64,000 bases of DNA from Lepidodermella squamata (GCA_047495785.1 JBLDXI010000024.1:2108001-2172000); one strand, 5' to 3'; numbered from the stretch's first letter, positions 4,185-45,367 are shown. Numbers and translations: made by a program. Notes: a model not told the origin generated them from the letters alone.

Positions 4185-4235
4185 AAACACTTTTGTCCTC
4201 AAATATTTTCATCTGGTAAAACCTCGCTCGTGAAA

Positions 4236-5299
4236 ATGAGCTGTTTGGTGTGCGAGTATCCGTTGAGTCAGCCATCCATAAGATACTCTCTGCGCCATTG
4301 CCAAGCTTGTCAGGTAAAGCAATCCAATTTGAAACCGCTCAAAACTAGGCTTTCCTTACAGAAATTTTTCAACCGCTGTCTGGAGGCGTTTAAGAAAGAT
4401 CCGAGGCCTCGCTTGAATTGCTCATCCGGAACGAAACGGTGTCCTGTGAGTTTCAAGCAGTGCCGTTATGTCAATTCCGGAGCTTTCTGGCGTGTTTCGT
4501 GCCGTCGATGTCGCTTCGATAAGTGCTTGTCAACACGCACGTCTCAAAATCAGAGCAGCTTCGATCAAGTGGTTCCAAATGGTTCCCTCACACAGATGAG
4601 CGAAAGTGGTTTGGTAGCAGAAGAGACAATCCATCTAGTCGCTGCAGTGAAGACGGTGAGACAATCCTAACACTTATCAAATATCTTAAATATAAATATC
4701 AATCAGATTCCAGTCTTAAACGAAACCAATATGACGAAAGAGAGTATTGGTCGAATTCTAGTTGCGAGTTTTGATGCAGCGTCAAGAGCCGTAGCTAAAT
4801 TCTGCTTAGCACAATCTGAGTTCACAGCGTTGCCGATTTCAAAACGCCGGGATGTTTTCGTAGAAACTTTTGCACCCATTTCACTGGCCTGCATTGCATT
4901 TTCCAGCTCTGTAAGAACCGGGCAAATACCTGCAATTGTTGCTCGAATGGTAAGCTTTATTAGAGACACTTTTCATTATATTCTTCATTTGATTTTAAGA
5001 TGGAGGGAACGCCCGTTGCTGCTGCGTTTTCAACGCTGAGCAACGTAAACATGACTGAGAACGATCTCGAGTGTCTGCTCAAAAGTATATTGAGAACGAA
5101 TATTTCTGGAAACTTGGACATCAGCTCTCAACTTATGGCCAACGTTGGAAAATTGATCGTAGATGCTGGAAAATACTTCAATCAAGTCGTGGAGGTCTTA
5201 TGGATCGAATACCCTGAAAAACTATTTCCTACTCGTAGCTCTTTGTTTGATGAATTTTGTTCCTCTTTAGTTTTGCTAAGGGATAATTCAACAAAATAG
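4236..5299 (+). CDS. Divergent nuclear hormone receptor (C4 zinc-finger DBD plus short LBD-like region), about 304 aa
   Basis: Exons 4236-4313, 4362-4655, 4707-4949, 5000-5299, all phase-0 GT-AG. Spliced protein reads CLVC..CQACQKFFNRC..C..C..CRRCRFDKCL; AVAKFCLAQSEFTALPISKRRDVF resembles the LBD helix 3-5 signature. Confidence 0.75.
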
Positions 5300-6622
5300 G
5301 AAACAGTCCATTAGCGTAGGAAAAGGTTCATCTTTCAGCAAACGGCAGTTGAAATATGTGTAGTGGAAGAAAATAAAATATTTACATTCAAAAAGTTAAC
5401 TGAAAGCAACTAGTAGATCTCACATATTCTCCGACAAAGCCAGGGCAGCTATCAGTTCAAATTTAAGGTAGAACCATCATGAAAGCATATCGACCACCTG
5501 ACATTCCAGCATTGTGACAAATGAGTGTTGCAGCGACTTGAAAAACAAAAAGTTGACGATTGCTTTACTATCGATCGCTATCACTACCTACGTCAAACCA
5601 CTTAGGCCCCACATTGAATTTACTGCATATATCCCAATATGAAGAGTTGCAGGTGACAGATTGAAGGAGTTAGATCTGCCTAAACCCAAAGCCACCTTGA
5701 ACTGCCCGTTTTTTCTTCGGAAAGAACCTTATGTATACCTTATGTATAGGTTATGTACACCTTATGGTATATGGTATAGAACTTTCGAATAATGTTCATG
5801 TGTGGCACCGTGACGCTATAATCACTACAAAGTAAAACCTCATTCACCTCGTTGAACTAGAAATTATGATAAAAACTGGACTGTAAGTCGTATTCATCTC
5901 TACTTATTCAATTTGCGATTTCTGATTCGCAACTGCTAACTTTGCTAACTGCAATGTGAAATCATATTGCATTTCCTCTTCCGATATTTGCAAATTTCAT
6001 AAAGCCACAGCGTGTTAGTATTTGCTTGGAGTCCATAGCGCCCAAGTTGCGAATAAGGCTGTAGTAAGTTTGCTTTTCCTGTATCTATACTATGCTGCTT
6101 GTAGGGTAGTGGAACCCGCAAACAAATTTCCCAGTGCCGCGGATTTATAATAACATCACACACCGAGGGTTCTGCTCTAAATAGTGACAACATATGGCAT
6201 TGGGGGGTTCGTTTTTCTCGATTGATCTAAGTAAAAACCTACATTCAACAACTCGATCGCAGCATTTAATGCCTCTTAATCCTTATCTTCAGCGTTTGAT
6301 TGGCTTTTATCGGAGCCTTAAAAATAAGTCCGTAGTTGATTTACACGATCGTTAGAAACGATTAGCAAAAAATGAGAGGTGAGATTATCCCTCGAGAATA
6401 TTTGAATTAATTGCACAATTATAGCTATAAGAGTTCGTCGCTTTAAATGTAATAGACTCCGTATTTCAGGTATTTGCCATCTTATTTATAATAAGCCTAT
6501 GCTGTCTATTTGCCGTGTTTTCATCTAGCTGTTTTTCCACTCCGAGAAACAGCTGCGAAAACTTAATGCGATCCATTAATTTCCGGCGATATCTTGCTAG
6601 CCACTGTGCATCTGCATCCGTC

Positions 6623-8106
6623 ATGTCTCTATCCCACTGTCGTCCGATTATCCTGAAAGCAGCAATATGCGCGACTCTGCTCGCCTCCTCGAGTTTTTTC
6701 TACCTCAATTTTCTTGCAACGGAGGAAGTAATGTCCTATCAAATGCATGGGCAAACCAGCCAGGCCCAGGATTCAATCCTCCTTGAAATCGACGCAATTT
6801 TATCCGCGAACGTTTGCAATCTAAACTACACCTTCTCAGGTAGATGCAAAGTGGAAGATAACCAAATTCCTTACCTGATAACTGGGGTGAAGAACGTGGC
6901 ATCTGCTCGGATGAAAGCTCAACGAATTCATGCTCAGAGTGCATTGGTGATAACCTTCAATTTCGCCAGAAATTACTACGTCGCGCCATTTCTTTACGCC
7001 CTACTCAGCCCATTTTTCGCCGACGTTAGATTCTGCGGACCATCTCACTCAAGAAAAATATTTTCCGATGCCATTGAATCTGTTTGGCCAATAAGCATTG
7101 CTGAGACATTAGGAGGTCTTTATATGGATTACACTAAAGGCCAAAGCGAACATTATGTTGATCATGGCGAGATGATTTACTCATGCGTGAATTTAGCGCT
7201 CAAAGCCGTGGAAATATCGAAGCCTAAGCTTTATGAAAATCTGGATGGGATATGGCTGATTCAAGACGATGTGATCTTCAATTTTTGGCACCTTTTCCTC
7301 TCATCTGTGGTCTATGACCCGAATAGGAGCTATGTCATGCCCTGGCTTACAGTCTACGACATATCGACTCTGAACCGTTGCTCAAATGATACGGAGGTCT
7401 ATTTTGGCGGTAGAAAGACTGGCCCGATTTCGCAGGGAGAATGTGACCAAAAAGCAGTATGGGACTACTATCCTGAGATATATAAGGAACAGGTTCAATC
7501 TTTCCATCGAGTGAGTCATTGCGCCTAGCCGTATTTTATGATAATCTTCTTCTATTACAGGAACTCTATGAATCAAAAGACCCAGTTTTCGTTGCCTCGA
7601 GAAAATTGCTGGAAAAGAATTCCGCCGGTCCAAATCGAATTTTCGCAGGGCTTGCTGATATCTTCTACGTCAGCAAACAAGATTTCGGCTATATTTTGCC
7701 TATTTTTGAATTGGCACATAAAAATAGACTTTTCGCGGAGATAGCTGTAGCAACTGCCTTTCACGGCTGCCGACCTCTTGATTCTTTTGATATCATCGAC
7801 AGCGGTGGCTGGTCTCAGTATTACAAGGTAGTTCAGTTATTATTAATTCTAAAAATATCATTTCTTTCATATTTTTAGATGCCAAATGGTAAATACAACA
7901 GAATCCCTATCCGTGACGTTTATGACGCGAATCGGTTCTTATTCGGGCATCCTTTCAAACTAGGAGGCGTTGCATTGGGGACATTGCGAAACGACGAGAT
8001 CGTTCGAAATCAAAGCAATGCGGAACGCTGTATTTTCTGTGAAATTTACGAATATTCCCTTAGTCTACGGCGCACATTGATGTCTGACTTTCTGTTTTCG
8101 CGGTGA
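6623..8106 (+). CDS. STELLO C-terminal-domain-like glycosyltransferase, paralog 1
   Basis: Exons 6623-7510, 7561-7827, 7879-8106; TM anchor; motifs LVITFNF, FFADVRFCG, GIWLIQDDVIFNFWHL, GLADIFYV, EIAV, FGHPFKL. Start taken at MSLSHC. Confidence 0.75.
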
Positions 8107-8428
8107 TATGGTATTATGAATGAAGACACTAAAAGGTCGATATACGACATTATCATTTGCACCCTTTGGGCATCTAAAATACTCAAATGAGTGAAACATT
8201 TTTTAACCATCCCATGACTCGCGGAATCATCCACCTTAAAAGATATTATGCGAGCTATCGACAGCGTAATATCGGTAAATATTTACTCTAAGACCCGTTA
8301 TAAGCGTTACAACAGAGTTCATGCAAATTTCATATACAGTGTCAGTACACATCGAAAGTGTCTCAGATTTATTCATGCGTCCCATACGTATACCTGGTAT
8401 ACCTGGTATCCCGACACATATAGAGGCA

Positions 8429-9676
8429 ATGAATCGAGCATATATGCTTGGACTTGGTTTCATTTTGACTATGGTTTCATTTAGTTTTTTCTACTTTGTT
8501 ATTGCATCAAACAAAAATGCTGAAACTCGATCTCGCGAACGCGGCTCAAGACTCCGCGGGTCACCTGGCGTTTTCGAAACGTGGCCATCGAATAGCAGAA
8601 ATCAAGCGTCTAATCCTGAATTAGACACCCTATGGTCCAAAGCGCCAAATTTGACGCTGCTTATCAGACTTTGGCACGGTTCTGTCGACGAATATTGGCG
8701 CGTTTTTGTTCCGAGTTACCTGCTGTTCTGGCCTAAAAATCGATGGCTTAACTCCGACTTGGCCCTAGTTTTCGATGACGAATCGTTTGAGGATAAACAA
8801 GCAGCTACTGTCATGTCCTTACTACCCCCATACCCGAAAATCGTGTTTGAAACAGCGCCACGCGGCACTTTTTGCCCTTACTTTCGATCTTACGGCTATT
8901 CTAGGCAGATTTACTCGAATTTTTACCTGGATCTACACTCTCAAGCCGAATTTATCGCAATTGCCGATGCTGATGCTTATTTTACGACGAAAGTTATCCC
9001 TGAGGATTTATTTGAAAACGGCAAGCCTAGGATGATAGGCTACAACGGCTGTTGCCAGGGTTTCGAAAATTCGGCGGCTGAAATTGTTGGCGGGAAAAAA
9101 TTGGGCGAATTCATGATCGGTTTAACTTTCCCATTTATCATGCGGCGGAAACACATGGCGCCGTTTCGTGATCACGTGACTCGCGTTTTCGGGAAATCTT
9201 CATTCGAATCAGCTTTCCGTCATATTTGCGCAAAATATACGCATAAATTAGGCGTTTACAGCCAATTTGACCTCATGGCTTATTACCTGTTCTACCACCA
9301 TCGGGATGAATATTCTTGGCATATTCACGACGTAACAGGAAGTGGTCATCATGTTCTAAACAAGGGTCGAATGACGGATGATCCGGAGGTTTTGGCGTAT
9401 TCGAAACCGAAAATAGGAGTTATGAAACATTCCGGGCACGAGGGCATCGACAAATTGTTATCCGTCGATTTCTACAAATACTTATGTGTAGCCGCAAATT
9501 TTTCAGAGTCAGTTGGTTCATGCGCATCGGAGCGGGAAAGGGAGGAGGTTCGGCATTTCGTCAGTCAAAATTTGCTCAACGACGAGGAACGGGAAAAGCC
9601 GCCTAAGGACGGTGATCAAATGATAAGGGATCGAGACTTGTTGCTGCGCAAATACAATGGATCATGGAATTGGTGA
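8429..9676 (+). CDS. Type II membrane GT-A glycosyltransferase-like protein (DUF6492-like), paralog 2
   Basis: Intronless; start taken at MNRAYMLG just before the TM; IADADAYF...PEDLFENGKPR; clear paralog of 2243. Confidence 0.75.
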   Translation: MNRAYMLGLGFILTMVSFSFFYFVIASNKNAETRSRERGSRLRGSPGVFETWPSNSRNQASNPELDTLWSKAPNLTLLIRLWHGSVDEYWRVFVPSYLLFWPKNRWLNSDLALVFDDESFEDKQAATVMSLLPPYPKIVFETAPRGTFCPYFRSYGYSRQIYSNFYLDLHSQAEFIAIADADAYFTTKVIPEDLFENGKPRMIGYNGCCQGFENSAAEIVGGKKLGEFMIGLTFPFIMRRKHMAPFRDHVTRVFGKSSFESAFRHICAKYTHKLGVYSQFDLMAYYLFYHHRDEYSWHIHDVTGSGHHVLNKGRMTDDPEVLAYSKPKIGVMKHSGHEGIDKLLSVDFYKYLCVAANFSESVGSCASEREREEVRHFVSQNLLNDEEREKPPKDGDQMIRDRDLLLRKYNGSWNW

Positions 9677-27625: not shown

Positions 27626-28018
27626 GGAATTAAATGGAACGCGCTGTATTACGGCACCTCGGCAAATTTTCTCAAATTTATGTATCCCACTTTCATTTTT
27701 GAAATTTTGAAAATTTCGAATATTCAAGTAGCTCAAAACAGAATTGAATTGTCGGCAATTTTTTTATGGATTCTCAGAGTTTATCTTCGAATAAAAATTG
27801 GAAATCGAAAAATTGGAAATCGAATAAAAATTCGAATAAAAATTTCAAAATTGGTCATCGATAGTGAAAGACAATTTTTTTTAATCAATGATTAGGGCGT
27901 GAATTTCACGTTCAAACTGGCATAAAAAAATCGATCACGGGTCAATTTTTTCGAAGCTTGTGCTGAATAAAATTATCCACGCCCTGCTCATGAGGGTTTG
28001 AACTTAATAAAATAAAGA

Positions 28019-29218
28019 ATGAATTTACGTTATCATTGCAAAAATGTTCCGTTGATTGTTACAATCATCATCCTAACAGTTTTAAATTATTTGAACTTAT
28101 ACGCATTTAATCATGTAAAATTGCATGATCCATGGAGCAATGCTCCATCGCTAACAATCTTGATTCGCATGTACCACAGATCGGTGGCTGAGTACTGGCA
28201 AGTTTTCGCACCTTCCTACATGCTATTCTGGCCGGCAAAGCACTGGAAGAACTCCAAATTGCTCCTTGTTTTCGATAAAGAATCGAACAAAGACCACGCA
28301 GCTGCGACCATTCTATCTCTTTTGCCGCCATTTCCTGAGGTCAAGTTCGAAAAATTCCCTCGAAAAGTGACACTCTGCTCGAAATGGAGGCGTATTGGCT
28401 ACTCGCGGCAGATCTTCTCGAATTTCTACAGCGATCAACTGGCAGATTCGGAGTATATCGGCATCGCTGATACTGACACATTCTTCGCGACAAAGGTTAT
28501 ACCTGAAGATTTGTTCGAAAATGGGAAGCCGAGAATTATTGGCTACAACGCATGCTGTGTTGGCTGGGAGAAAACGGCTGCGACAATAAGTAATGGCAAA
28601 AGTTATGGGGAATTTATGATCGTCCTCGGGTTCCCGTTCATCGTTAAAAGGTCCCACTTTGCCCCGTTTCGGGAGCATGTGAAAGCTGTTTATAACTCAA
28701 CATTCGAACAGGCTTTTAACAGCATTTGTTCGAAGTTTCCGGAGTACACTCAATTTGACCTTTTAGCTTACTACCTATTCATGCATCATCGCGATGAGTA
28801 TAGCTGGCATATTCGAGACAACAAAGATGCCGGCAATCCTCATTTCACCAAAGGCAGAATGACCGATGATCCTGAGGTGTTAGCCCGATCGTCGCCGAAA
28901 ATTGGCGTGATGAAGAATGCTGGCCATGTCGGGGTTGAACGTACCCCGTTCGTTTTGTACGATTACCTCTGCGTTGGTTCGAATTTTACAGCTGGGTCTT
29001 GCCCTCGTGAACCGGCTAACTACAGAGAAGCGATATCGAATTCGGTTGAGTACAATTTGGTGACGTCGTTTCTGGTGCCAAATGCTTACTGGTGGAAGAG
29101 GCGCATGCCGAAACTGGCCATGCTGCGCCGTCCTCTCGAAAAAAGGCCACACAATGCCGACGCCCTGTTCAAGGAACGTAAATTTGCTCTTGAAAAATAC
29201 GCGGGATCTTGGACATAA
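28019..29218 (+). CDS. Type II membrane GT-A glycosyltransferase-like protein (DUF6492-like), paralog 3
   Basis: Intronless 399 aa; long near-identical stretches shared with 2243; IADTD DxD motif. Confidence 0.75.
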   Translation: MNLRYHCKNVPLIVTIIILTVLNYLNLYAFNHVKLHDPWSNAPSLTILIRMYHRSVAEYWQVFAPSYMLFWPAKHWKNSKLLLVFDKESNKDHAAATILSLLPPFPEVKFEKFPRKVTLCSKWRRIGYSRQIFSNFYSDQLADSEYIGIADTDTFFATKVIPEDLFENGKPRIIGYNACCVGWEKTAATISNGKSYGEFMIVLGFPFIVKRSHFAPFREHVKAVYNSTFEQAFNSICSKFPEYTQFDLLAYYLFMHHRDEYSWHIRDNKDAGNPHFTKGRMTDDPEVLARSSPKIGVMKNAGHVGVERTPFVLYDYLCVGSNFTAGSCPREPANYREAISNSVEYNLVTSFLVPNAYWWKRRMPKLAMLRRPLEKRPHNADALFKERKFALEKYAGSWT

Positions 29219-29778
29219 TGAATTATGAATAAAATTATAGAATTTTTGTTACAATTGTTTTTTTTTGTAAAAGCTCATAAAAAAGAAAGGCGCCAATGTT
29301 CAATGGCGTAAATATTTTTAAAGATACCTAAATACAAATTCCGGGGTAGTTGACGTTTTAAGCGCCATTTTCAAGGTCAAAGTCCGACATGTGGGTCCAA
29401 ATATTGGATCCAGATTTTAGACCCAGATACTGGCTCTAAGCATTTAACTCACAAATCTGGATCCAATCTGGATCTAAATCCTGGAGATCGGGTCACTTAT
29501 TTGAACTTGAAGTGCTATTTGATAAGACAATGTTTTTCGAAGTCTGAAACTTCATTTTCTTAAATTCTGCTTTCGAGCTAAGGTATAATTCCTAATTTTC
29601 CGGCAATTTATTGTTCGTATTTTTCCATTTTGACCTGATTTTAATTGGGTCAATAAATAATTGATGGGTGATTTTTTATGAGTGAAAAAAATTAAATGGC
29701 ATAAAATTCTCCGTAATTTTTTGAGAATTAGGAAGGCAAAATCTTTTTTATTCTCTAAATTTAGAAAATTATGAAAAA

Positions 29779-31255
29779 TCAATGGTATGTAGCTAATTTA
29801 TTGAAATATTTAGAAAATACGCAAAATAAGCAAGTCTCAGCTGACTGTTTATGCTCAATTTTGCCGAAGATTGCCGCTGCTATGCCGCTCATTTTAACAG
29901 GGTGACCAAATAAAAAGCGATGCGTGTCGTAAATGTCCCAAATATCGTGCCGACCAGCTGTACCATTTATTTTCTAAAATTGAAAATAATTTAAATTTGA
30001 CGCAATTCATCGCAGTAATAAGTCGACTCACAAAATGCCTACTCCAACCTCGGCTGTCAATAATGCCGAACGAGCCGTGTTCCAGACATCCGTGAAAAGC
30101 TAAAGCGACAGAATTTTCCTGCCAAACTCGATGTTTCCTCGCAAAAGCAAACATAGGCAAGACTACCGAGAAATCACGTCTGGCCACGTAAAATATATCA
30201 GCAAGACCTCCGAAAACACGCCGATTGCCTTTCATATTTTTCCGAAAATTAATTGAGCAGATTTTAATTGAGGAATTTCTCTTCGATTCGTAAGATAAAT
30301 GCTGTAAATCATAAAAAAAATTCAAAATTACTGGATATTTTTTAAATTATACCTGTAACATGCTGAGTACAGGAAGTTGGTGAGTCATAGCAAGGGTCCA
30401 AGGATTTACATGGCTGCAAGTCCTATTGTCGATTGGCCCATCGCTTCGATCGCCAAAGTACAAATCAGTTTGATTGTTACAACTTCTCAGGGTGTCTACA
30501 TCGTAAACAACCATCCATGGCATCACGTGACTACGAGTCAAGTCATATTTTTCAGATTCGATCAGTAGCTTCCATAGATGGAACATCACATCGTCATGCA
30601 TGAGCCAAATACCCTCGACACGCTTGAATAGCTCAGGTCGTTCATTTTCGACGGTTTTAATGGCTAAATTAACGCAGTAACTAGTCGCCTCACCCGCCCC
30701 AGGTACAAAGGGTGCCTTTCCTTCGTCGTAGCTCAGGTAATAAGGCCCCATTTCCGAGGCTATTTCATCACCCCATAGAGTCGCGATTTGACTTTCGAAG
30801 ATTTTACCGTCATTTGTCGATCCGCAAAATCGAATGTCAGCGAAAAATGGCCCGTAAAGAGCTAATAGGAGAGGAGCATGTTCGAACGCGTTGAAATTGA
30901 AAGGAATGACTAGAAGAATTGATTGGCGTAATTTTGTCGCAATTTCCGCCAGTATTTTTTCATCACCGAAATTCGGCGGCAAGTGGCGATGTTCATAAGA
31001 ACAATTAGAGGTTATTGATTCGTTGCAAAATGAGTCGATAATTCCGCCAATTCGAGGTAAAATATCCAGAAGAGTGTAATTTCTGGTCTGGTTTAGGCCA
31101 GCAGTCTCCTCAACTTCGACTTTTTCGTCAGATTTCGGCGGAATAGGACGAATAACTGCGGATTTGGGCGATATTAGGCCAATAAAAATCGGGTAAAGTG
31201 AGAGGCAGAAAGCGATCGAGACGAAAATTGATTTTCGAATAAAAGAGCTAACCAT
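29779..31255 (-). CDS. STELLO C-terminal-domain-like glycosyltransferase, paralog 2
   Basis: Exons 31255-30353, 30301-30032, 29973-29779; GIWLMHDDVMFHLW, GLADIFYV, FLFGHPVK; same intron positions as paralog 1. Confidence 0.75.
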
Positions 31256-32301
31256 AATTTTTGCACAGCCATCAGAAGCTACTACAAATTTTATTTATTT
31301 TATTTCTTTTTCACCTGTCAATGAGTAAGAATCCTAGCCTTATTGAGACTTATTGAGCCAACTTTCTTCATTCATCCATTCATAAATAGCCAATGCAGTC
31401 CCATTGATTTTCCAAAGAAATGGATGACGAGCAAATTTTCAAAATTCAAATTTTATTCGTTTAATTGTTATTTTATCATTTTTCATCACAGGACCCCAGT
31501 TTCAACCATTAATAAGCTGAGTTTGAAAATGCAAATTTTATTCGTTTTTTCATTTTTTTTATGAAAATTAAATGCGTCTGAAGTTGAGACAAAATTACAG
31601 CCGAAAGCTGTATCGTTTCCGGCCGAAGGCTATCGAAGGCATTTTTGATAAATTCAATTTTCATATTTTATTTATGCATCCAATATCGATTTTTTTTATG
31701 CCAATCGCAATATTGCGCCTTCCTCCTCTCTCACACCATCGGAAATTGTTGCTAATTTAGCCCCGTAATTTTTTACGTCCAGGAATATAGCTCCTCTCAA
31801 GCTATATCGAGTTCTTTTCCTGATTCAGATTTTTCACAAATATTCTTGCCTATAATTTTTGGTCGTACACCAGCGTCGTCGATAATTATTGCGCCCGCTC
31901 ACTCGCACTCGCGCGCGCGGTGATAAAGACGAGAGGATAGGAAATCTGTCTTCTCATTACACACAATAATATTTTGCTTTAGATAGCGAAGGCATGCATG
32001 CCACTCAGCACCACATACTATACAACAATGAAGGAGAAAAATAATTCAATATTTATTATTGATATGAATATGACAGACAGTTGGCTGGTGGTGTGTAGTA
32101 TGCAATTTTAGAATATAAAATCAGGCGCGAATGTTGTGTTTTATTAACCATAAATAAATAACTGCAAAAATACACCGGCAAGCCTATTTTGATTTTTATA
32201 TAATAGTATCTCAAGAACCAAATCGAGCGTATTATTTTTCCTTGAAATTTCAAATTAATATTTTTTCCATGAAAATTAGGCATCCTTCACGTGACCATCG
32301 C

Positions 32302-33742
32302 ATGCGATTTAGTCGCTTCACCCGGATTTTTTTCTTCTTCGCTGTTATAATAGCCGTAATTTACGGGTTGCTACTGACTGTATCAACACGCCGGTTAAAA
32401 TACCGCATCAAAACCGCCCATACACGGGGCTATCCTGATTTCTACGATTCAGAAACCGAAAATTGGTACGACTTCAAAAAATTCCGGAATAATTCGACTA
32501 CGGCAAATGAAATCGACATTGAAAGTCAGGTTTCGGCAATCGTGGCCGCTTTCAACGATAAATACGTCGCGAATGTCCGTAACTGGGTCACGCAGTTGTT
32601 GTCACGTGACTCGGAGGTGATAAATCGTGCGCGCAATAGCTATCACGTTATTCAATACCGATGCGATTCGCAGTTCAAATGCGGCGATTTTAGCCAACGA
32701 CTTCGCGGTCTAGTTGCCGTATTCTACCTCGCCCTACTCAGTGGCGATTCAATTTTCGACATTCAATGGCTGCACCCGGATAGCCTTGATCGGTATTTTT
32801 CGATAAATGCCGATTTCTACGGATTTTCGAGAGATGAAAATCAACTGGAGAAAGCGTTATACGACCGGCAAGATCTCAGTTTTTATGACTGCAGTTTTGT
32901 CGATGATAATCGAAAAATTGAACGCGAATTTATTGCTTTCACTAAGCTCATTAAACGCCATGTGATGACACGGTTACGCCTCAATTCACTGCTGCCTTTA
33001 CAAATCATGCGACAACATTCGAGCTTTCAAACTCAAATCAGGTAGAAAATAAAAATCCTCCTTAATTAATAAAAAAATAATTAAGAATTTATTTAGGGAC
33101 TACAATTTAAAGGAGGTGCCTTTCAATGCCTGGATTTCTGCGGCTCTTCGGTTCATTTTTTCTAATCCTTCGCCTAAAATCTCGCACGAAGTCGACAGAA
33201 CAATCGAAAAAATTGCTCAAAATTCTGCGGAAAAATTCATAAAAATCGGCGTCTATTTTCGTCCCAGCGATAATTTGTTTGAAATTGATTGCTACGCCTC
33301 AGAGGTTCATCAAATTGTTGCGGAAATTTCGAAAGGAGCGAAAGAATCTGCATTGAAATTCGCCCTTTACGTTATTGTCAAGTCGGCGGCTTTGACGGAT
33401 CAATTTCTCTCAAAATTCAACGATATCGTGAGAAATTCCCAGATTTCGAACCTCGTAGATATTTATCCGGCAGAAGGTCATGATAACCGAACGGAAAAAG
33501 AGGATGACGAAGAGGATGAGGAGTCTTTTTCAAACGACTCAGAGAAGAATTCGGCTCTTTTTGTGGACTGGCTAGTTCTGACGAAAATGGACCGGCTGGT
33601 TATAGGCGGCAGTAGTGGTTTCGGCGAAATGGCTGCCCTTTTCTCGCTCAAGCCAACACGCCGATTCCGATCGGTAAATATCGGAAATGTAACGCAAGCG
33701 TGTGATTTCGAAGACTTTAGAACAATCGATCTTAAAACATGA
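32302..33742 (+). CDS. Fucosyltransferase-like GT-B protein (FUT8/NodZ/O-FucT-like), paralog 1
   Basis: Exons 32302-33041 and 33097-33742; TM anchor; YRC..KCGDFSQRLRGLVAVFYLALL, IGVYFRPSD, DWLVLTKMD..GSSGFG match the FucT motifs. Confidence 0.7.
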
Positions 33743-33878
33743 TTTATTCTATTGATTTTGAAGAAATAAATTGTTATTGTTTTTCGAAAAAAATATCGCG
33801 TGGTCAGAAGCACGCGATTCGAATTTTAACGCAATTTTTCTAGTTTCATTCATTTCAAAGATTTTTGTTTCCGAAAAA

Positions 33879-35822
33879 ATGACTCCGAGGAATAACCAAT
33901 TTCTATCGCAAAATCCGGCTTTCAAAAAATGCCTGATAATTATTGCCTGGGCTTTGGCGACCTTTTACTGCCACAATTATGGCAATCAAATTTTTGCAGC
34001 AGTTCGTCACGCTCTGTTGGATTCGACCGATGTGGTGCCGCCATGTCGAGATAGCGTAATTTTGTTCAGCGTATTACTGCTCACCCTGTTTCAAATCGGA
34101 CTCGGTGGAATTTTACTCGCTCAAATCGAAAATCTGGTGAAATTTTGGCGCGAGTTACGCTTGAGTGAACGGCGCAATTTTTTGGCCTCGGAATCGTCGA
34201 TTCTACCGATTTCTGCCTCAATCGAGCCGCGATTCAACAGTTTCTCGGCGCCTTCGACCCCGCACAAGTCGGCGTCATTTGCGACGCTGGTTGACCTGAA
34301 GTCATTCGACCGTGACGATATTACGCATTTCTCACCTCAAACGATTCAGCACAGCTTCTCTGTTTCGGCGCTCAACTCGGCGGATTCGACTAGAATTTCA
34401 CTGAGGTTGCAATGTAACATGGCTTTGATGCATCTCTTCGGCACGCTGGCGACTAATGGAGCAATCGCTTATTCAGGGCCAGTCCTTACTTTTGCGATCA
34501 AATCGATGGAGCCGTTGATTAGCTCGATTATTTCGGCTCTGATTTGGCGCAACTACAACGCAGTTGAGATGCGTGGGTTATGTCTGCTGCCGGTCATGAT
34601 GTAAGAAAAATTTACATTATAATATACATCGGGTCCCTCGAGGAACACAAGCAAAGAAAATACACGGAAAAAGGTTCAGAAACTCTAAAATGAGTGGCCA
34701 AGTCACATCTCATGGCCAGAAAATTGTTAAACAAAATTCAAAAAATCACGGGAATAGTAATCAGTGTGGCTCTTTTTATGGGATTTCAAACTCCCGGAGA
34801 AGTTTGCTCCAACCGGGTAAAATACCGAAAAATACCAAACCAGTTACCATCGGGTTTTCCCGGTTTTCTCAGGAAATATTTTATTTCTTCGGTTAAATCG
34901 GTTAATAAAGCATTTAACTTGTTAATGTGATTAAAAAGATCCGGAGAAATTGGGTAAAACCGGTTAAAATACCGAAAATTACCGAACCAGTTACCATCGG
35001 GTTTTTCCGGGTTTTCTCCGGGAAATTTCGGGTAAATCGTGGATGAAAGGTGAAATATTCACTCGGTAGGTTAATTTAAAAAAGTAGCTGCATTTCCTAA
35101 AAACAAATTGCAAAATTTTTTAAAATAGTTGCGAAATTAATTGGTTATTTATAAGTTATTTATTAAATTATTATTTTGATGTGAAATCAAAAAATTATCA
35201 TTAATTTCTGACTAGTTGATTTATTCTTTCTCTTAGAATTGGAGCAATCGGAGCAAGTTGCCGTTTGGCTGATCTGACCCTCCCACTTATGGGCGGAATT
35301 GCAATGGCTTTTGCTTCAAACGTTTTCTTCGCATTTCGCGACCTAGCCTTGAAAAAAGCCGCAATTCGCGATGGGCAAAGCTACGCATCGCTCACGTCTC
35401 GTCTCCACATCACCGCGTTGATGTCAGTTTCAGCTATGATGCTGCTGGTCTGGCTGGTCCTAGGTCACGTGACCTATCAACCCAACGTAGCTTTTTACTA
35501 TTTCACAGCTAACGGAGGGTCAGAAGCGTTGGTTAAAAGCGTGCTATCCGGCCTGTTGCATTTCGCGTCTTCTGTCATCGGAATCCTATTAGTCACCCTG
35601 TCGATGGGTTCGAAATCAATTTTCGAAAAAATCAGCCATCAGCCTAATTACTCGATCACGGCGCCGACGGTGTGGCAAAAAACGGCTGGGTTAATTGCTG
35701 GTCTGGCGGTTTTTGCGGCTTTTATTGCCGTCCAAGCGATGAAAAGCCCAATTACATTGCAAAGCCTAGCTTTCGGGCTGATTTACATTATCGGATTCGC
35801 TCTATTTATTTCGAGGCAATAA
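33879..35822 (+). CDS. Triose-phosphate/nucleotide-sugar transporter family protein (SLC35E-like)
   Basis: Exons 33879-34600 and 35237-35822 (phase 2); multi-TM; LTFAIKSMEPL and GIAMAFASNVFFAFRD..KK match TPT-family motifs. Confidence 0.7.
34795..35035 (+). repeat. Two adjacent copies of the ACCGAAAATTACCGAACCAG dispersed repeat (intronic)
   Basis: AAATACCGAAAA(A/T)TACC(A/G)AACCAGTTACCATCGGGTTTT occurs at about 34820 and about 34967. Confidence 0.75.
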
Positions 35823-36063
35823 AACGAGAATTATTGAAGTTGCTATTGACGCATCTTATACCATTGTCTCATAATACAATCAATGGAGCTATTTTAGAGC
35901 TTCCGCTCATGAATATTCATCAAATCAATGCTTGGATCCTATATACAAGTATGATAAGACCAGACATACACATTGAAGTTTTTGCCGCTTGGCACCTGGT
36001 CTGAGCTTTTAAGGCGCACTAGATCTCATAATGAAAAAGATTTATTATTATTACCTATACAAA

Positions 36064-38490
36064 ATGAGCGTATCCAGGCGAGCCTTACCTTCGAATTACC
36101 GGACCCTAGGCTTAACAGCTTGTGGCCTAATTTTATTTTGCGGTCTGTATTTCTCTGGAAACGGCCAGAATTCAGCAACGAAACATGTCGATACAGCTCA
36201 TTTGATATCGCATAATTCAGACCATGCCGAGGTTAAGGAGGTCATCAAAACAGAGAGCAAGATTCCCAGTTTTAAATACTGGTGGCAGCCGAAGCCTATG
36301 CATGAAAAATTCAACTCTGATGTTGATGAGTTGGTGCTGTCATTGGAGAACAATTACGTAACCAGTATGCGAAACGACCTGCTCAATCGGCGGCTGGCGA
36401 AAACGCGAAAAGTCGTCGTTTACGCGTGCGATCGCAATCACGTCGTTAATGTGAGAAAATCTATTATAGTTTAATTCTTTGAAATTAATGAGTACCTTGC
36501 TGAAAAAGCGCAGAGAATCCTCAAGTATGAATTCCTCAAATTACTTGAAAATTAGCATTTTTTATTAATTTTTTATTCCATGCTTCCAAAGCTTTATTTG
36601 AGGCGATTAAAGGTGGGCAAGGTGGTAACCGATTCTTCTGCAAAGTTTCAGAATTTTTCAATTTTCCCCCGACTTTCGATGCATTTTTGACAATTTTTGA
36701 AGCTCTGAGATTTGCCTCTTAAATTTTTTTACAATTCAAAAAATGCAACAAAATTTCCGAAAAATTCCAAAAAAATTAGCAATAGTTTTATTTATTCAAA
36801 ATTGTTTTACTTTAATTGTTGAAATAAATTTAATTTTGTTCAGCAAATAGGTTGCGGAACTTGGATCGAACGAGTTCAAGGCATGATATCTGCATTCTAC
36901 CTCGCTGTGGCAAACGAAGCTGTATTTTTGATACAGAGCTCATATCCCGACAATTTCGAAGCGTATTTCGAAAACCTATTCGCTCCTTCAGTCGTGCGTG
37001 AAGTAATAACAAACGCTGGCAAAAGCTTCTCCGACTACGTTGACGGCGATCACGTGATATTCAAAGGCAAAAATCCGGTTGATTTTATCAAAGCAAAACA
37101 AGTTACGAGGATGAAAGTGCGATCGCTCGAACATTTCGATAAATTACTCAATCGAACGCGAAAGGGCGTGTCGTGGCGGTTGAAATTCGCCAACCGTGAC
37201 GTCATGCTAAGCGCGGCGTTACGGCTAATTTTCGTCAAGCAAATGACGTCGAAAATGTCATCGCTCGTACAATCTTACCTGGAGCAGATGAATCGATTAG
37301 GGCAGGAGAATGTGTTCCGATTAGGAATTCACATTAGATTTGGTCGCATGGAATGGGGCGAACAGGATAGGATCACTTTCGGCCAAATTGACTGCTTAAT
37401 TCATGAGGCGACGGCAATTTCCGGCCAGTTGGCTGGTCTATCTTCAAAAATGCGACATTTCCAACATTCCCTGGGTAAGTATTTATATATTTTAAAAATT
37501 GGAAAGTTTGGCAAAATTATTCAGAAAAAATGGGCCGAAATTAAGTACCAATTAAGTACCAATTAAGGCGCTCACCTTAAAATGTGAGGCTTCGGCACAA
37601 GATTTCTTAAAATATAGCTTTCTGAGTATTCTGTCTGATGAAAAAATTTGTCTCTCTCCAAAAATAGGATATTAATTATCAATTTTTGCAAACAATGCAA
37701 CGATTATCTCATTGAACACCATCGCGTCAGGATGGCCGAGCGGTCTAAGGCGCCAGACTCAAGATCTGGTCCTCGAAAGAGGGCGTGGGTTCGAACCCCA
37801 CTTCTGACAACATTTTTCGCAATTTCCAACAATTTTTTTTATCAAGTCTTACAAAAAATAGAGTGATCAGTTCTCGAAAAAAGTGCCAACTGGAGGCATC
37901 GGGGATTGAACCCGAGACCTTCACAATGCGAATGAGACGCTCTACCACTGAGCTATGCCCCCTAGGCTACAAGATAAAGCTTAAATGGTAACCATAATTA
38001 TCAAAAGATTGAGCCAAATGGACATCCTTAATTTAAAATTTTGAGGCTTTAGCACTATACTTCCCAAAATATTTTTCTCGAATTTTACTTCTGATAGAAA
38101 ATTGCAAACACCAGGGTCCTAGATGCTCGTTTTTCACTATTATATGCATTTTTAGCTATTTTTGTGGCATCTGATTCGCAAGATGCAGCCGAATATGCTG
38201 TCGAAGAATTCGGAAAACGAGGAGCCGCTGCCTTTATAATTCCCGGCCAACCGACAAATTTCGATAAAAGCGATTTCGGGTCAAATAAAGACGACATGTG
38301 GGCGCTGAATTCAAAAACCTTCGCCGACTGGCTGCTTCTCGGTGAAATGGACGCTTTGCTAATGTCGCCGGGGCCAAGTTTATTCGGTGAAACCGCAATG
38401 TTGATGAAAGGGAAACCAGCTATGAAACTCATCCTTAATCCTGAAGACATTTGCAAATTCCAAAATGTATCGATTAATGCTTTCCAATAA
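36064..38490 (+). CDS. Fucosyltransferase-like GT-B protein, paralog 2
   Basis: Exons 36064-36450, 36844-37474, 38156-38490; YAC..GCGTWIERVQGMISAFYLA, LGIHIRFG, IFVASD, DWLLLGEMD..SLFG. Confidence 0.75.
37726..37809 (+). tRNA. tRNA-Leu(CAA), intronless, intronic location
   Basis: Full cloverleaf inside intron 37475-38155. Confidence 0.93.
37891..37962 (-). tRNA. tRNA-Ala(CGC), intronic location
   Basis: Identical to the other Ala copies. Confidence 0.92.
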
Positions 38491-38498
38491 AAATTTTA

Positions 38499-40679
38499 TC
38501 ATAATTTATTTAATAGCATTTTTTGAAAATTATTCGAATATTCTACCAAGGAGCAGTACAAACATAAGATATCCTTATTATTCTCCTTAGTTTCATTTCG
38601 GTCTGATTTTCCAAAGGCTGCTCTGACGTGTTCCGACAATTTGAAAGGATGAGTTATTATAAAACGAGTGGCATCATAATCTTGATAGGTCGTATTTCGC
38701 CGCCAGCCGCCATACTCGTCTTTGTAGTAGCCAACCCAGCCGTCATTAGGTACGATCCGCAACGAAGAAGGGTCCAGACAGCCGTAGTAGACGAGAGGCC
38801 CGGCAATTTCTTGCCAAACGCGTAATTTCCGCGTCATTTCGAACATTGGTAGTATCAAGTCGAAGTCTTCCTTTGTGACGTAGAGAAAATCAACCAGGCC
38901 GCCGATAGCTCGCCTTCGGCCCATTGTTGCCGTTTGCAGAGTTGACCAACATTTAGAGTGCAAGGTAGAATTTCGCGCTTTATACTCCAATTCCTGTAAA
39001 TTTCATTTTGAGTGAATCAAATGGCCATTTTCAATTATCAAAAAATTTTCAAAAAAATTGTTAACCTTAAACATGGTACTCAAAATGAGGTGCAAAGTGT
39101 AAGTCCTAACCCTACATATAAGGTTCCAATTAGGTTCCAATTAAGGTTCCAGCTAAATCTGAGACTCCAGAGATTACCCTAAAATGAGGTTTTTCGAATT
39201 TCATTTCCTAATATTATAGAATCTTCAAATGGTTTTATATTAATTTTCAAGCCATTTTGAAGAATTTAAAAAAAATTGGAATTTTTTTGATATTAAGAAA
39301 TTTCAATTAGTAGTGAATTATTCATTTTTTAAGGTTTTCTAGCCGACTTGACCCCTCAATCCTAGGCTACTATTAGTGATCGGCGATTATAAGCGACTGT
39401 GTTACTCGTTGGATATTGGAAAAAATGAGGTAAATGCGAATTATGCGCATGATTTGATCTGAACTTTCGGCAAAGTCGTTAGAAATTCCATGTATCGATT
39501 TTACAAATCAGTGATTTTTGCGATGTCAACAGTCTTGGATCAATTTGTTATGACATCGACCAAGTTGCTCGGTAATTCAGCTCAATAAAATACTTGGAAC
39601 CACTGATTTTCCGCTGAGTTTTAAATTATTTTCGGGAATTCGTCGATTTCCTATCGCCATTCGATTTATTGATCGAGCATTGGAATTTTTTATTGATTTT
39701 CTAAATTTGCTGCTTAATCAGAACGGCTGAGCTAAACAATTTCATGATTTGAAAATTTTCTAGACAATTTTTTCAGAATTTCTGTATTTCTTACCTCGAA
39801 ATAGCGCAGCACCGGAAATTTGTATTGTTTTGGGTAGTAGAGCCACGGATTTATCGAAGAGCAAGGCCCGTCACTCAGGCCGTTCAAATCCTCACTACAA
39901 GCCTTCAGTGTATCAATATCGTAAACAACAATAGGCGACAGAATGTGGCTTTTCGCTAGATTCAGGTGAAAAGTTGTAAACTGATCTTCCTGGAAAAGGC
40001 GCCAATAATTGAACATCACATCGTCATGAAGCAGCAAAACGCCGGTGAGCTTGTCGTAGAAATCTGTATTTTCCACCGATTTCACGGCTAAATTGATACA
40101 GTAGTAAACGCCCTCCCCTCGTTCGGCCAACAACGGCCTCTGATCCGCCTCGTAATCGAGGTAAAACTGCGAGAAAATATCCGCCCGATAGCGGCCCCAA
40201 TATCGCTGAATTTCGGTGCGAAACAGCATTCTGCTAGGCCCGCAAAATCGAGTTTGAGCAAATAGCGGGCTGTACATGGCGTGGACAAGTGGAGCTGTTG
40301 CCGAGTTTTTAGCGTTGTTGTACACAATGATGAGCAAAGTAGATTGGCGTAGTTGATCCGCAAATTTTGACTGAGCTTCGGACAACTTTTTCGGAATTGG
40401 AGGCGGGATGTGCTCTGGTTTTTGAGGACACTCTGTCAGTTTTCTGCGTAATTTATCTGTAAAATCAGCTCGAATGCCTGGAATTAGGCTGTTCAATGGC
40501 GAAGATGACGGTAATTGCTTCAATTTCGGAGTAGTTGAGGCGTTAGTTGGAGGTTTTTTTGCGGGCTCATCTGTTGTAGTCACCCTAATATTATTCGACC
40601 ATCTCCAGAGTGCGATAAGGGCGAAATTGCAAATTAAACCGAGAGTAAGAGTTGGAGATATTGCTCCGCTAAATTTCAT
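38499..40679 (-). CDS. STELLO C-terminal-domain-like glycosyltransferase, paralog 3
   Basis: Exons 40679-39795 and 38993-38499; GVLLLHDDVMFNYW, GLVDFLYV, WQEIA, THPFKL. Confidence 0.75.
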
Positions 40680-41094
40680 TGGCTAATATTCCTTCATTTT
40701 TCAGGGTCAAAAATGCGAATAAGTTATAACTTTACATTAACAGCATGTTAGCCACTTATTTATTTCACCATGCCCTCTTTTCATGCTCGCTTCGCCTTTC
40801 AGGACGTCCGTCAATGGCGTGGGATTTTAAAATAGATAACGAGACCGAGTAGCAGTCGTAAATAATACCCCATTGATGTTAATGCCATTGAACCTAGAAA
40901 ATTGCCTAAAATTCGATCCGAAAATTGGTAACCGCTCACTCTACATCAAAATTAAACGATGAGGCATTCAAATAATATTTTCCTTTTTTGAATGTTCAAA
41001 TGGAATAGAAATAAGCAATGTGGCAGTGAAATTGAAATTTGAAGAAGATGATTTTTCTGAAAATTGCGTTGTTTATTTCTGGACTAAAAATGTA

Positions 41095-42326
41095 TCACTT
41101 CAACATCATTTCACGGCTTCGCTTTCTAGCTCGAATAATAGCTTCTTCGACCTCGATTTTTAAATCCAGCGCGATGTCAGGACTAGTCGTTTGAATTACA
41201 TCATTCAACAGGATGCAAACTGGGTCAGCGCTGGATAACAGCTGACTTTGCGGCTGCTGAGCCGCTGTCTGAGCCTGCGCCAGCGCCGCGTCCTTTTTCA
41301 TTTGCTTCATCACCAGCTCAGCCAATAGACTAGTTCCCTGCTCGACAACACCGTAATCATGGCCATTCGTCCTATTATTTCCAGTTGACTCGCGCGTATG
41401 GTGGCTTGCTACTGATGGCGCAGGCAAGATGTCGGGATTTCGCTCGGGATTCACCGAATTTTGCGAGGAAATAGGCAGGTCAAATCGGTTATTTCCGGTT
41501 CCTGAATGGGGCGAACTGGGCCCGCCGCCCTCTGATAAGTCAGGCCAGGAAGAACTTTCGTTGTCCGAGTCCAAATTTACATAAATTTCACCGCCAGAAT
41601 TAGTCATCAGAGACCTAAAAAAATAGGAAAAATTCAATAAAAAGCTTAAAAATATTCAAAATTATTCAATTTCAATTTTAATTACCGCAGGCGGAAAAGA
41701 GGTCAAGCGAATTTTGTTTTTTTTTATATTTAGTGGCAAGTTTGCAAATTCACGAAGCAGCAGAAGCATTTGAAGGAAGCTTTCTGGAAAAATTCTGAAA
41801 ATTCAGGTAAAATTTGTAAAATATCCAAAAAATGCAGACTTATAAGAAATTACCCTCCCAACATTGCCCCGAAATATCACAATTTTCGGATTTAAAACTG
41901 ATTTTTAATAATAAAAAATATGGTTTTGTCCCAAATTACCTCACTTCACCAAAAAATATGGAAAAATAGGTAAAAAATTGTAACTCACTGGTCTCTGACG
42001 ATGACGGGATCTAAAAAGGACATTGCCTTTTTATGCCGCCACTCCTTCTGGCGCCTTCGCCTCATTCGAAACGCATCTGTCTGTTCACCTTCGGGCAGTT
42101 TTTTCGGCGCAATTTGCCGTTGTGTGTAGTAATTTTTCAGGCCGTCCCACTTTTGCCGCGCCGTTTTGCCATCCTCGAGATGCAACCGCTGGGCTATATC
42201 AGCCCAGGCTAGGTCAACTTTGTCGATCCGGCGATGATCAGGATCGGCTGGGTCCCATAACAGGCCTCGTTCTCGCACCAATTCGATCAATTTCGCCTTC
42301 TCAGGGTCGGACAGTTTTTCTCGCAT
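41095..42326 (-). CDS. MADF (Myb/SANT-like) DNA-binding protein with BESS-like C-terminus
   Basis: Exons 42326-41989 and 41614-41095 (phase 2); LIELVRERGLLWDP..AWADIA..KWDGLKNYY..W...MSFL; C-terminal DPVCILL..LKIEVEEAI. Confidence 0.8.
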
Positions 42327-42955
42327 TTTCGCGAAGAAATTCTTTGGTTGTAACTGAGTTTCGCAAAGGCTTTTCTGTTTAAAATATACGTACGCAGCCT
42401 TGTATGTTTCTACGTAAGAAGTTGGGTATAGAACGCATAAAGATAAAGCATTCAGAATAATATAATATGAAAGAGCCCCCTGCTAGAATATTACAGCAGC
42501 GCGCGCTTATCTTCACATTCTATTCATGAGGCCGCGAATTTTGTTTACACGCGAACATATTTGCTATAAAATATACTTCTTACTTTTATAATACGACCGC
42601 TTGATATATTATTATTATTATTATATGCTGTGCAGAAAGATATGAAAAATAATGCGTGTGTGTGTGCGTGCTTATCTTTTATGTTCTATGCTCGCGCAGT
42701 TGTAGAAGCCGGGTCGAATATTTTAAGCATATGGTTGGAAACGAGAGACGGAAATCGATCGACTTCTTTCTAAAGCTGCTTCTAAATTTAGTAGCTCGTA
42801 ATAGGAGAGTAAAAAATGTATTAAACAACATCTTCCGTCAAACAATTCTTTGAAGATCCAAAAGCGCAAATTTATAAAAAATCCTCCTTAATAATTAAAA
42901 AATGCGATTTATTGTTCAGCACCTTTAAAAATTATAAACACCGAAAAAATACAAT

Positions 42956-44152
42956 TTAAAATTTTTTTCTCTTCCGGAATTTTTCAGATCTCGCTGGTTT
43001 TTTCGGTTTCGTAACATTTTTGGCATTCGGTGGATAGAAAATCGGGTTCGACGGTAAGGTGTAATTGAAGAGCGTAAAATCCGGCAAGTAAGCTTGGAAT
43101 AAAGCCCGGACAATCTCCACCGAGATTCCATCGACCTTTTCCAGCCTAAAATCAATCGAACTGCGGCCTGAAGATGACCCGAAATATTTCGGCAAATGAA
43201 TGTGACCCTGGCCATTTGTCAGCAGGCGAATTAAGTAGTCGGAATCATTCAAAATCGTCTCGAATTTTCCGATGTAGTCGTAGGGTATTAAACAGGGTGC
43301 ACACAATCTGTACTGCTGAAGCCAGTGAACATCGGAGAAACTTCCTTGCTGTAATTCAGAGTGGATAAATCGGAGAAATTCATCGATTTTCACGCCGGTT
43401 CCAGGTTCGATTTCATCTTCTGATGCATTAGCCCTATAGGTTCTAAGTATCGCTCGACCATAGACCTTGTTGTAATAAGGATTATTGGCGAGTTGAAACT
43501 TCGACCGGAAAGCTGAATAAAGCCTTTGAAAAGGTTCTCGAACCCACATAACCTTGGTAAATAGTTCCAACATAACCCGTTGATCTTTTTTAGAATACGA
43601 GCTCAAAGTTCGAAATAGCAGCTTTCCGTTAGGTCCGTAAATGAATTCATCGCTAAAATTATCTGGGCTGGTCGCATAGTCGGAATAAGGACCAAATGAT
43701 AGCAGAATCTTCCGCCAACTTGTGCTTGCAACTTTGGGCGGAGCGCATAGCAGTAGTTGAGTTTTCTCTTCGACTAGAATGTAACGAGCAGCTTCGATAT
43801 AGGGTTCGAGCTTGATGTCCGTTTTCCGGTGATAGGGTGAACGCCTCGAGCTAGGAATGTCGAAGCACCCAGCAGCAAGTTTGTCGCGGCGCTGCGCGAA
43901 TTCCGCCTCCATCTCGTTGTCAATCAAGGTGGCGTTGAAAATTGTGCGATTCCAGCGTGGAATAATAACTGATGAATCATCATCATCGTTATCGATAGGC
44001 ATATCCTGGGCTGGCTCCATTAACATGTAGATCGCTTCTTTATTTCGTAGAATAATGTTACTGTTGATCGTCATTATCGCGGTAAAAATGGCTAAAATGA
44101 CTGTTAGTGTGATAAATTTCTCAACCGGCTGCATTATTTTTTTCGATCGCAT
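42956..44152 (-). CDS. Golgi carbohydrate sulfotransferase (Sulfotransfer_2; CHST11/HNK-1-like)
   Basis: TM anchor after MRSKKIM; 5'PSB PKVASTSW, 3'PB VREPFQRLYSAF, HW....LC.PC..YD.IGKFET, Y..DF.LFNY. Intronless. Confidence 0.88.
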   Translation of the reverse strand: MRSKKIMQPVEKFITLTVILAIFTAIMTINSNIILRNKEAIYMLMEPAQDMPIDNDDDDSSVIIPRWNRTIFNATLIDNEMEAEFAQRRDKLAAGCFDIPSSRRSPYHRKTDIKLEPYIEAARYILVEEKTQLLLCAPPKVASTSWRKILLSFGPYSDYATSPDNFSDEFIYGPNGKLLFRTLSSYSKKDQRVMLELFTKVMWVREPFQRLYSAFRSKFQLANNPYYNKVYGRAILRTYRANASEDEIEPGTGVKIDEFLRFIHSELQQGSFSDVHWLQQYRLCAPCLIPYDYIGKFETILNDSDYLIRLLTNGQGHIHLPKYFGSSSGRSSIDFRLEKVDGISVEIVRALFQAYLPDFTLFNYTLPSNPIFYPPNAKNVTKPKKPARSEKFRKRKKF

Positions 44153-45367
44153 ATCAAATAATAAAAAATTTGTCGAATTTGCCGCGGTAATTTTTGCCCC
44201 AATTTTAATGCGCACCTTTGGGTTAATTAATTTTTCATGTCCCTCCCTTGCTTGAGGGATGCAGCGCGTTAGTTTCAAACAGCCCCCGGCTGAGAGAATG
44301 TTCTTGCAGCAGAGACTGTAAAAAACGGTTAGAGGTGAGAAAAAATACGCGTAATCGATTAATTTGCGCAAATTAAGGGAGTCATATGATCGCGCATTGT
44401 TTCGCCATATAAATGGTATGTAATAATCAATAGGTCCTATTGCTAGACGAACCCGACAGGTGGAGTCATGTGACATAAACTTCTGCGTAAATGGTAACAT
44501 TTATTTCAACTAATTCGATCGAAAGAGGAAAGTCAAGATCAATAAATGTTTAGACGCTAATTTGCATGTACTTAGCAGCGACATCGAGAGTTCCCGAGAG
44601 TTAGATCTTGAAAAATTGAGTTTCAGGTTATGTTTGCGGAAAATTTCGACGTGATACATTTTTGAGATGAATCGCCACGAAAAAACTGGAAACCAGTTTG
44701 AATGACTCCAATTTTGAATGGCTCCAATTGAACTTTATTAGGAAATAAATATATGAAATAATTGTTTGGAAAAAATGAGTTTCTACGCGCTTCAATAAAA
44801 CTATTCATATTATGCTAATGAGGTGTTCGAGATTTACACCTTATTTGTGTCCAATAATTCAATACCTGCAACAATTTTTATAAAATCGAGGTAAAGTGAG
44901 AACATTTTGAATTTGTTCACAGCCATTGGATATCGACTCTCCTCTCTTATAACCCGAAAATTAAAAAATTATCATAATTCTTTCCGATTTTTTCTGATCC
45001 GAAAAGAGCATAACTTTTCTTCAACATGAAACTCACGGCACTCCAATCTCCAATCATCTTGAGTTTTATCGAAAAAGAAAGCTGTTGAAGCGGAAAATTC
45101 AATCTAATTTCATATTTAGAACCCCTTGAAAGCAAATTGCCGGCGAAGGAAAACAAGCTATCTCTATCCACAATCACCTTGCAGCTCAGTAATATGAAGA
45201 AATTCTTGCAAACGCGAAACAATCCTCTAAAATCGAATATGATGTAACACTCGATGGCGTTTCAATTTGTTTCGTAATTTTTCCTTTTCTTTGTCATCTC
45301 GGGAAAGAAAGAAAAAGAAATCCATCTCAGTCATTATTAATTTCCATCTCAGTCATATATCGTCAAC

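Follow-up and report, generated by a model that had tools for sequence, protein, structure and literature searches.

In the nematode Caenorhabditis elegans, glycogene clusters have been described (C13A2.1-12, K06H6.1-6 and T15D6.1-12) in which several CAZy families are mixed with methyltransferases, nucleoside diphosphate (NDP)-sugar transporters and proteins carrying a domain of unknown function (DUF); these clusters show similar expression profiles, may comprise operons and, in one case, contain the gene nhr-77 (Paschinger et al., 2023, PMC7614267). Here, we report on a comparable locus of Lepidodermella squamata, namely a run of eight consecutive genes over ~16 kb (28019-44500), seven of them glycosylation-type and one encoding a MADF protein. 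It lies within a stretch of 64,000 nucleotides (nt) (GCA_047495785.1 JBLDXI010000024.1:2108001-2172000), hereafter the window, whose first letter is the origin of all coordinates given below. The published assembly has 122 Mbp, 157 contigs and 43% GC, and the accompanying paper makes no mention of glycosyltransferases (PMC11660948). The physical clustering of these genes is real and is unexplained by uniform gene placement. The run is a lineage-specific glycogene cluster, and, as for its meaning, we consider the evidence evenly poised on whether some of its sub-modules cooperate on a secreted or surface glycan.

The likeness to the C. elegans clusters lies in the adjacency of genes for putative type II Golgi enzymes belonging to different CAZy-type families, with several members of a family in one cluster, and in a nuclear-receptor or nuclear-receptor-like gene inside or near the cluster; the NDP-sugar transporters of the worm clusters may have a counterpart here in a TPT-like gene with a score below the Pfam cut-off. 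Glycogene clusters are thus already described in nematodes; the present one belongs to another phylum, Gastrotricha, and gathers another set of families, i.e., DUF6492-like GT-A, STELLO-like, GT37-like and Sulfotransfer_2 proteins, with no methyltransferase. C. elegans uses spliced-leader (SL) trans-splicing and operons, and correlated expression has been shown for the worm clusters. A preliminary description of the window had started from the premise that animal glycosylation genes are normally scattered, which is too strong given the mixed glycogene clusters of C. elegans (PMC7614267). Bacterial polysaccharide and O-antigen loci, as well as the metabolic clusters of plants and fungi, likewise place non-homologous enzymes and a transporter serving one class of product side by side, whereas here the genes are found on both strands and their linkage is not kept in a relative.

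Within the run, the gene order is A3 (+), S2 (-), F1 (+), T (+), F2 (+), S3 (-), MADF (-) and ST (-). Five families are represented, including a GT-A glycosyltransferase (A3), STELLO-like proteins (S2 and S3), fucosyltransferase-fold proteins (F1 and F2), a TPT-like permease (T) and a sulfotransferase (ST) of the type using 3'-phosphoadenosine-5'-phosphosulfate (PAPS). Pfam, fold and homology evidence together uphold the initial count of seven glycosylation genes out of eight consecutive ones, from five unrelated families, with the transporter being only probable. The reading frames of all eight genes are intact once spliced, and each of the six enzymes has a single hydrophobic segment in its first ~40 residues, which is the layout of type II Golgi proteins. 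With four enzyme families among eight neighbours and with N-terminal anchors, the run is a glycogene cluster in the sense given to this term for C. elegans (PMC7614267). No additional convincing open reading frame (ORF) was found between the genes of the run or in the 23.6-28 kb interval. The window itself is compact eukaryotic DNA of ~40% GC with short GT..AG introns (e.g., 55 nt in F1).

To appreciate this density, a chance model was built on uniform gene placement in a 122-Mb genome with a span of 16 kb. The expected number of spans containing five independent glycosylation loci is ~0.002 per genome, even at 700 independent loci, and for the five named families, at 50 loci each, it falls to ~1e-6. 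It would take more than about 1500-3000 independent glycosylation loci to make chance a plausible explanation; the observed density exceeds the uniform-placement expectation, a comparison with chance on which the preliminary description had made its interpretation depend.

Regarding the GT-A family, A3 (28019..29218, +) is a single-exon gene encoding a DUF6492-like type II protein of 399 amino acids (aa) with a transmembrane segment at residues 7-25. Two paralogues are located upstream in the window, A1 (2243..3457, +), which is 73% identical to A3, and A2 (8321..9676, +), which is 53% identical to A1 and A3. All three are unmatched in Pfam even at E 10, the DUF6492 cut-off not being reached, and they have only nine database homologues; sequence searches of the PDB with the A family, the F family and the transporter gave nothing useful. 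An AlphaFold (AF2) model of A3, built with the database homologues, reached a predicted local distance difference test (pLDDT) score of 81. Compared with the PDB by Foldseek, it returned 279 matches at E<=1e-3, and all 50 of the 50 matches listed are GT-A glycosyltransferases; the GT-A matches include TarP, glycogenin, LgtC and alpha-3-GalT. The DxD motif (D151xD153) is invariant across 12 A homologues, and A1-A3 are hence assigned a GT-A Rossmann-like fold with a DxD motif. In a fold-atlas search, A3 was closest to a cnidarian cluster (TM-score 0.68) and to phage DUF6492 (TM-score 0.53/0.85), the likeness of A1-A3 to DUF6492 being one of features and fold only.

The STELLO-like genes of the run are S2 (29782..31255, -), which has three exons (31255-~30350, ~30346-~29980 and ~29973-29782) and is convergent with A3, and S3 (38499..40679, -), which has two exons (40679-39735 and ~39002-38502) and is convergent with F2; both encode type II proteins. 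A third paralogue with three exons, S1 (6515..8103, +), lies outside the run, and homology confirms it, along with the A1 and A2 pair, as the further STELLO-like and GT-A genes reported earlier at 2-10 kb. The STELLO/DUF288 family (PF03385) includes Arabidopsis STL1/2 (PMC4906169), which S1-S3 resemble in that their Pfam scores reach or approach the cut-off of 27.8 bits and in their Golgi-type, type II topology. Indeed, S2 is above this value (29.9 bits, E 3.4e-7), S1 barely so (28.0 bits) and S3 under it (24.2 bits, E 1.8e-5), S3 being homologous to S1 and S2 by BLAST (1e-39 to 1e-45). In contrast to the Arabidopsis proteins, S1-S3, with lengths of about 450-490 aa, are matched by the profile in its central part only (positions ~163-308 of 387). 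The family has an invariant DD at positions 221-222. A profile search of the PDB with the S family found nothing, and a protein homologue search with exon 1 of S2 gave no match; by hhalign, the profile of the A family is unrelated to that of the S family (probability 0.1%). In terms of arrangement, S2 and F1 are divergent with a 1.0-kb spacer between them, and the stop codons of the convergent F2 and S3 are 8 nt apart (38488-38501), so that their 3' untranslated regions must overlap on opposite strands.

The fucosyltransferase-fold family comprises F1 (32269..33742, +), which has two exons separated by the intron 33042-33096 and whose 472-aa product is GT37/GT23-like and of type II, and its old paralogue F2 (36031..38490, +), which has three exons (36031-~36474, ~36850-~37566 and ~38150-38490). 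Both are unmatched in Pfam, with no XG_FTase or other fucosyltransferase (FUT) model above its cut-off; in the family, XG_FTase scores 20.5 bits on P0019, for a cut-off of 23.4. This family is rare, since only 17 relatives, one of which is from a chytrid, were retrieved when 1.84 billion representatives were searched exhaustively with HMMER. The GT-B-variant fold of fucosyltransferases was found on the full-length homologue P0010 (433 aa; pLDDT of the predicted model, 82), and F1 itself is assigned through homology. P0010 aligns with both F1 exons (E 7e-18 and 4e-13), and its identity to F1 and F2 is only 25-34%. Its model matches AtFUT1 (GT37) best (E 1.7e-13, TM-score 0.53), followed by FUT8 and NodZ (both GT23) and POFUT1 (GT65), the matches spanning E 1.7e-13 to 1e-5 and TM-scores of 0.4-0.53. 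Fold comparison, for which Foldseek was proposed at the outset as a check on the families, has recovered on predicted models a GT-A fold for A3 and a fucosyltransferase fold for this F homologue. While the likeness to AtFUT1, FUT8, NodZ and POFUT1 resides in the predicted fold of P0010, the F family differs from them by having no Pfam match at cut-off, and F1 by lacking two conserved positions. Three motifs characterize the family, i.e., an N-terminal CGGxGDR, the motif-I Arg and a C-terminal SGFGE, the latter two being present in F1 and F2, where KIGVYFR (F1) and LGIHIR (F2) align with the family KIGxQxR. In fucosyltransferases of the GT37/GT23 type, the motif-I Arg binds the GDP phosphate. 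As a side observation, the C-terminal motif of the F family is found at the distal end of two database proteins of 750-800 aa, P0015 and P0023; in P0023, the F-like domain is preceded by a region with a weak match to GT6.

Located between these two genes, T (33888..35822, +) has two exons (intron 34601-35236) and encodes a protein of 432 aa with about 9-10 hydrophobic segments. Its language-model features relate the N-terminal half to TPT/Nuc_sug_transp/EamA clusters (0.93), with values of only 0.85-0.88 for the C-terminal half. T is probably a divergent TPT/nucleotide-sugar-transporter-like permease of the DMT superfamily, and this is the least secure of the family calls. F1, T and F2 share one strand and are separated by short intercistronic spacers (145 nt between F1 and T, 208-241 nt between T and F2), as in an operon, and an AATAAA is found just 3' of F1. 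The Pfam TPT family includes the GDP-fucose transporter SLC35C1, which makes the position of T between two fucosyltransferase-fold genes the most suggestive pairing of the locus. F1-T-F2 is the foremost candidate when a functional unit is sought within the cluster, and a shared pathway, for which we see as much in favor as against, is plausible above all for this triad. The 636-nt intron of T also contains a ~90-nt repeated element in two copies (34775-34867 and 34922-35014), whose translation recurs upstream of A3 (about 27545-27736) and which may be a repeat resembling miniature inverted-repeat transposable elements (MITE).

At the end of the run, ST (42956..44182, -) is a single-exon gene for a type II carbohydrate sulfotransferase of ~408 aa, counted from Met-107 of a 514-aa ORF, with a transmembrane segment at residues 23-41. 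It is matched by Pfam Sulfotransfer_2 (PF03567; E 2.8e-37, 129.7 bits for a cut-off of 22), carries PAPS motifs (PKxxSTSW and RxPxxRxxS-type) and, in the protein homologue search, has crustacean CHST11-like proteins as its only named matches (29-31%). The sole non-glycosylation gene within the run is the neighbouring MADF gene (41095..42326, -), which has two exons, a MADF_DNA_bdg domain (Pfam E 8.7e-13) and a C-terminal exon without Pfam family.

The paralogues differ widely in identity, from 73% (A1-A3) and 53% (A1 or A3 with A2) to 34-48% within the S family, and F1 and F2 are alignable only at their C-terminus. These differing ages suggest that the cluster was enlarged in separate steps around an older neighbourhood of a sugar porter and an F gene; for the same reason, duplication of an A-S module was considered and rejected. 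The cluster would thus have been built by repeated single-gene duplications of differing ages beside this older sugar-porter/F-gene neighbourhood. If the animal trans-splices, F1-T-F2 could be transcribed as one unit, in which an importer of nucleotide sugars is joined to two enzymes of the fucosyltransferase type. The addition or extension of sugars would fall to the GT-A and STELLO-like enzymes, and the sulfation of the product, with PAPS as donor, to ST; we infer the chemistry of both the fucose donor and the sulfate target from folds alone.

A competing explanation is that the genes are co-located without a common pathway, the window being part of a duplication-prone and fast-evolving region, similar to nematode chromosome arms, where secretory-pathway families expanded in the lineage build up and interleave; each gene would then serve a glycosylation route of its own, and their proximity would have no functional meaning. 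We give this possibility a little less than an even chance, and several observations weigh in its favor and against a cooperating glycogene cluster. Some of them come from other genomes, in which linkage was searched within +/-10 kb by tblastn and with a hidden Markov model (HMM) of the S family. One usable relative was available (metagenome contigs L004, L005 and L008), together with L025 and L027 from the same samples. On L008, 2.7 kb separate the F-family gene (P0010/P0032) from the sugar porter, the two being oriented to each other as they are in the window, and the order is sugar porter, F gene, and then Arf, UQ_con, DDX23 and TAF2. On L025, the F gene adjoins a zf-C4 nuclear-receptor gene (8323-10966 for the two together) and genes without Pfam family, and on L027 its neighbour is ODAD1, a GT31 gene being located at a distance of 4.4 kb. 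No homologue of A, S, T or ST was detected by tblastn or the S HMM within 10 kb of these three F genes, several neighbours of which have no Pfam family. The adjacency of sugar porter and F gene is hence the only one common to the window and the relative, which lacks the cluster and has its F genes dispersed among housekeeping genes. Conserved linkage, the second support sought for the preliminary interpretation, therefore fails in this relative.

The same holds for A homologues. At 20 other loci carrying one, the other cluster families are absent as judged by tblastn and the S HMM, L002 excepted; those without other families are L001, L003, L007, L009 and 15 metagenome loci (L010-L024). On L002 (4994-7642), a compact, intron-poor Logan contig of 7.6 kb, an A homologue with 46% identity has a Peptidase_S74 gene in its vicinity, and a piece of a STELLO-family gene (E 6.9e-24) is found 1.1 kb downstream in convergent orientation. 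This piece was not detected by the S-family HMM and corresponds to another section of the Pfam profile; the A-STELLO proximity on L002 is a hint only. That L002 carries two A-S pairs was also considered and was not upheld.

Further points in the same direction come from the window itself. No 7-9-mer was common to the upstream regions of the 10 glycosylation genes above shuffled sequences, which is a weak test. The very different paralogue ages imply that there was no module-wise duplication. Tandem duplicates (two cyclase and two PAN/kringle genes) and transposons indicate that the region is generally duplication-prone, and a class-C G-protein-coupled receptor (GPCR), a fragment of a long interspersed nuclear element (LINE) and four tRNA pairs complete this picture. 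At the level of individual proteins, T remains under the Pfam TPT cut-off (21.9 bits and E 1.3e-4, for a cut-off of 30), and F1 lacks two otherwise conserved family positions, 'SD' and 'HID', and may thus be non-catalytic.

Against mere co-location, the density exceeds by orders of magnitude what uniform chance allows, save for a genome with at least 1500 independent glycosylation loci. Moreover, all the genes are intact and have catalytic-type motifs, T is located between two F genes at a spacing of 145-241 nt, and the analogous clusters of C. elegans have correlated expression. On the whole, the original interpretation holds as to the families and as to clustering that is non-random, and conserved linkage was not recovered in the relative.

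The cooperating-cluster reading also has a more ambitious form, in which the locus would be made of operon-like multi-family units, with F1-T-F2 as a polycistron linking the import of a nucleotide sugar to its use and the whole 16 kb as one co-expressed pathway for a surface or adhesive glycan that is of the fucose type and sulfated, assembled recently and repeatedly; we judge this version unlikely. Finally, it is highly improbable that the locus is a foreign island, with A genes (DUF6492-like, as in phages and giant viruses), F genes (GT37-like, as in plants and chytrids) and STELLO genes (plant-like) horizontally acquired as a block and then domesticated: phage and Nucleocytoviricota proteins are indeed among the nearest fold clusters of A, the F family is as rare as reported above and has a chytrid member, A3 and ST are intronless, and the compact L002 associates an A homologue with a STELLO-family piece, but spliceosomal introns interrupt the S, F and T genes, the GC content of the run is that of its flanks, the paralogues are old and not coeval, the A homologues group in eukaryotic (cnidarian and mollusc) clusters, the syntenic F gene of the relative is without the other families, which argues against arrival as a block, and the STELLO gene of L002 is missed by the S HMM.

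The surroundings of the run are also informative. The sugar porter (Sugar_tr; 19745..23604, -; Pfam E 3.8e-50) is 74-85% identical to the porter of the relative (L004/L008). It had been described as an altered sugar porter at 19-24 kb; the porter gene is confirmed, and its alteration is rejected since the Cys-rich loop exon is conserved in the relative (79.5% identity). At 12969-13223 (+), a fragment whose translation shows 69% identity to the N-terminal exon of the porter in the relative looks like a partial porter duplicate, beside a transposon region at 13.6-18.4 kb.

Between A1 and S1, a divergent nuclear-receptor-like gene is found (4230..4979, +). The nuclear receptor announced in this area receives no support from Pfam, the ORF at 4230 being unmatched at E 0.01, and gains it from homology, with 36% identity over 81 aa to a gene of L025 (8323-9150) that has a zf-C4 domain at E 5e-11. 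It can be speculated that this gene or the MADF gene acts as a regulator, which would parallel nhr-77. Of note, the homologous zf-C4 gene of L025 is the one that adjoins an F gene, an arrangement which echoes the presence of nhr-77 in a C. elegans cluster.

A divergent pair of tRNA-Leu(CAA) and tRNA-Ala(CGC) genes, identified with Rfam and ARAGORN, occurs four times in 20 kb (18499-18739, 22134-22368, 25141-25380 and 37726-37962). The sugar porter holds one of these pairs in an intron, and F2 holds another, the last, in its last intron. The matching porter exons of the relative (L008) are almost contiguous, which suggests that the tRNA pair spreads as a unit into introns. Directly after the cluster, two tandem 'putative cyclase' (PF04199) genes (45840-49310) have long unmatched N-terminal parts. 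The class-C GPCR, the LINE fragment, the transposon and the two duplicated PAN/kringle genes are also located in the window.

If the genes of this locus cooperate, they would provide a compact entry into the building of surface or adhesive glycans in a little-studied phylum, as well as candidate functions for three animal families that are poorly understood, the DUF6492-like GT-A, STELLO-like and GT37-like ones. Should the operon-like pathway prove true, it would be for an animal what polysaccharide loci are for bacteria. Taken with the clusters of C. elegans, cooperation among these genes would support the view that compact, trans-splicing genomes gather glycosylation genes.

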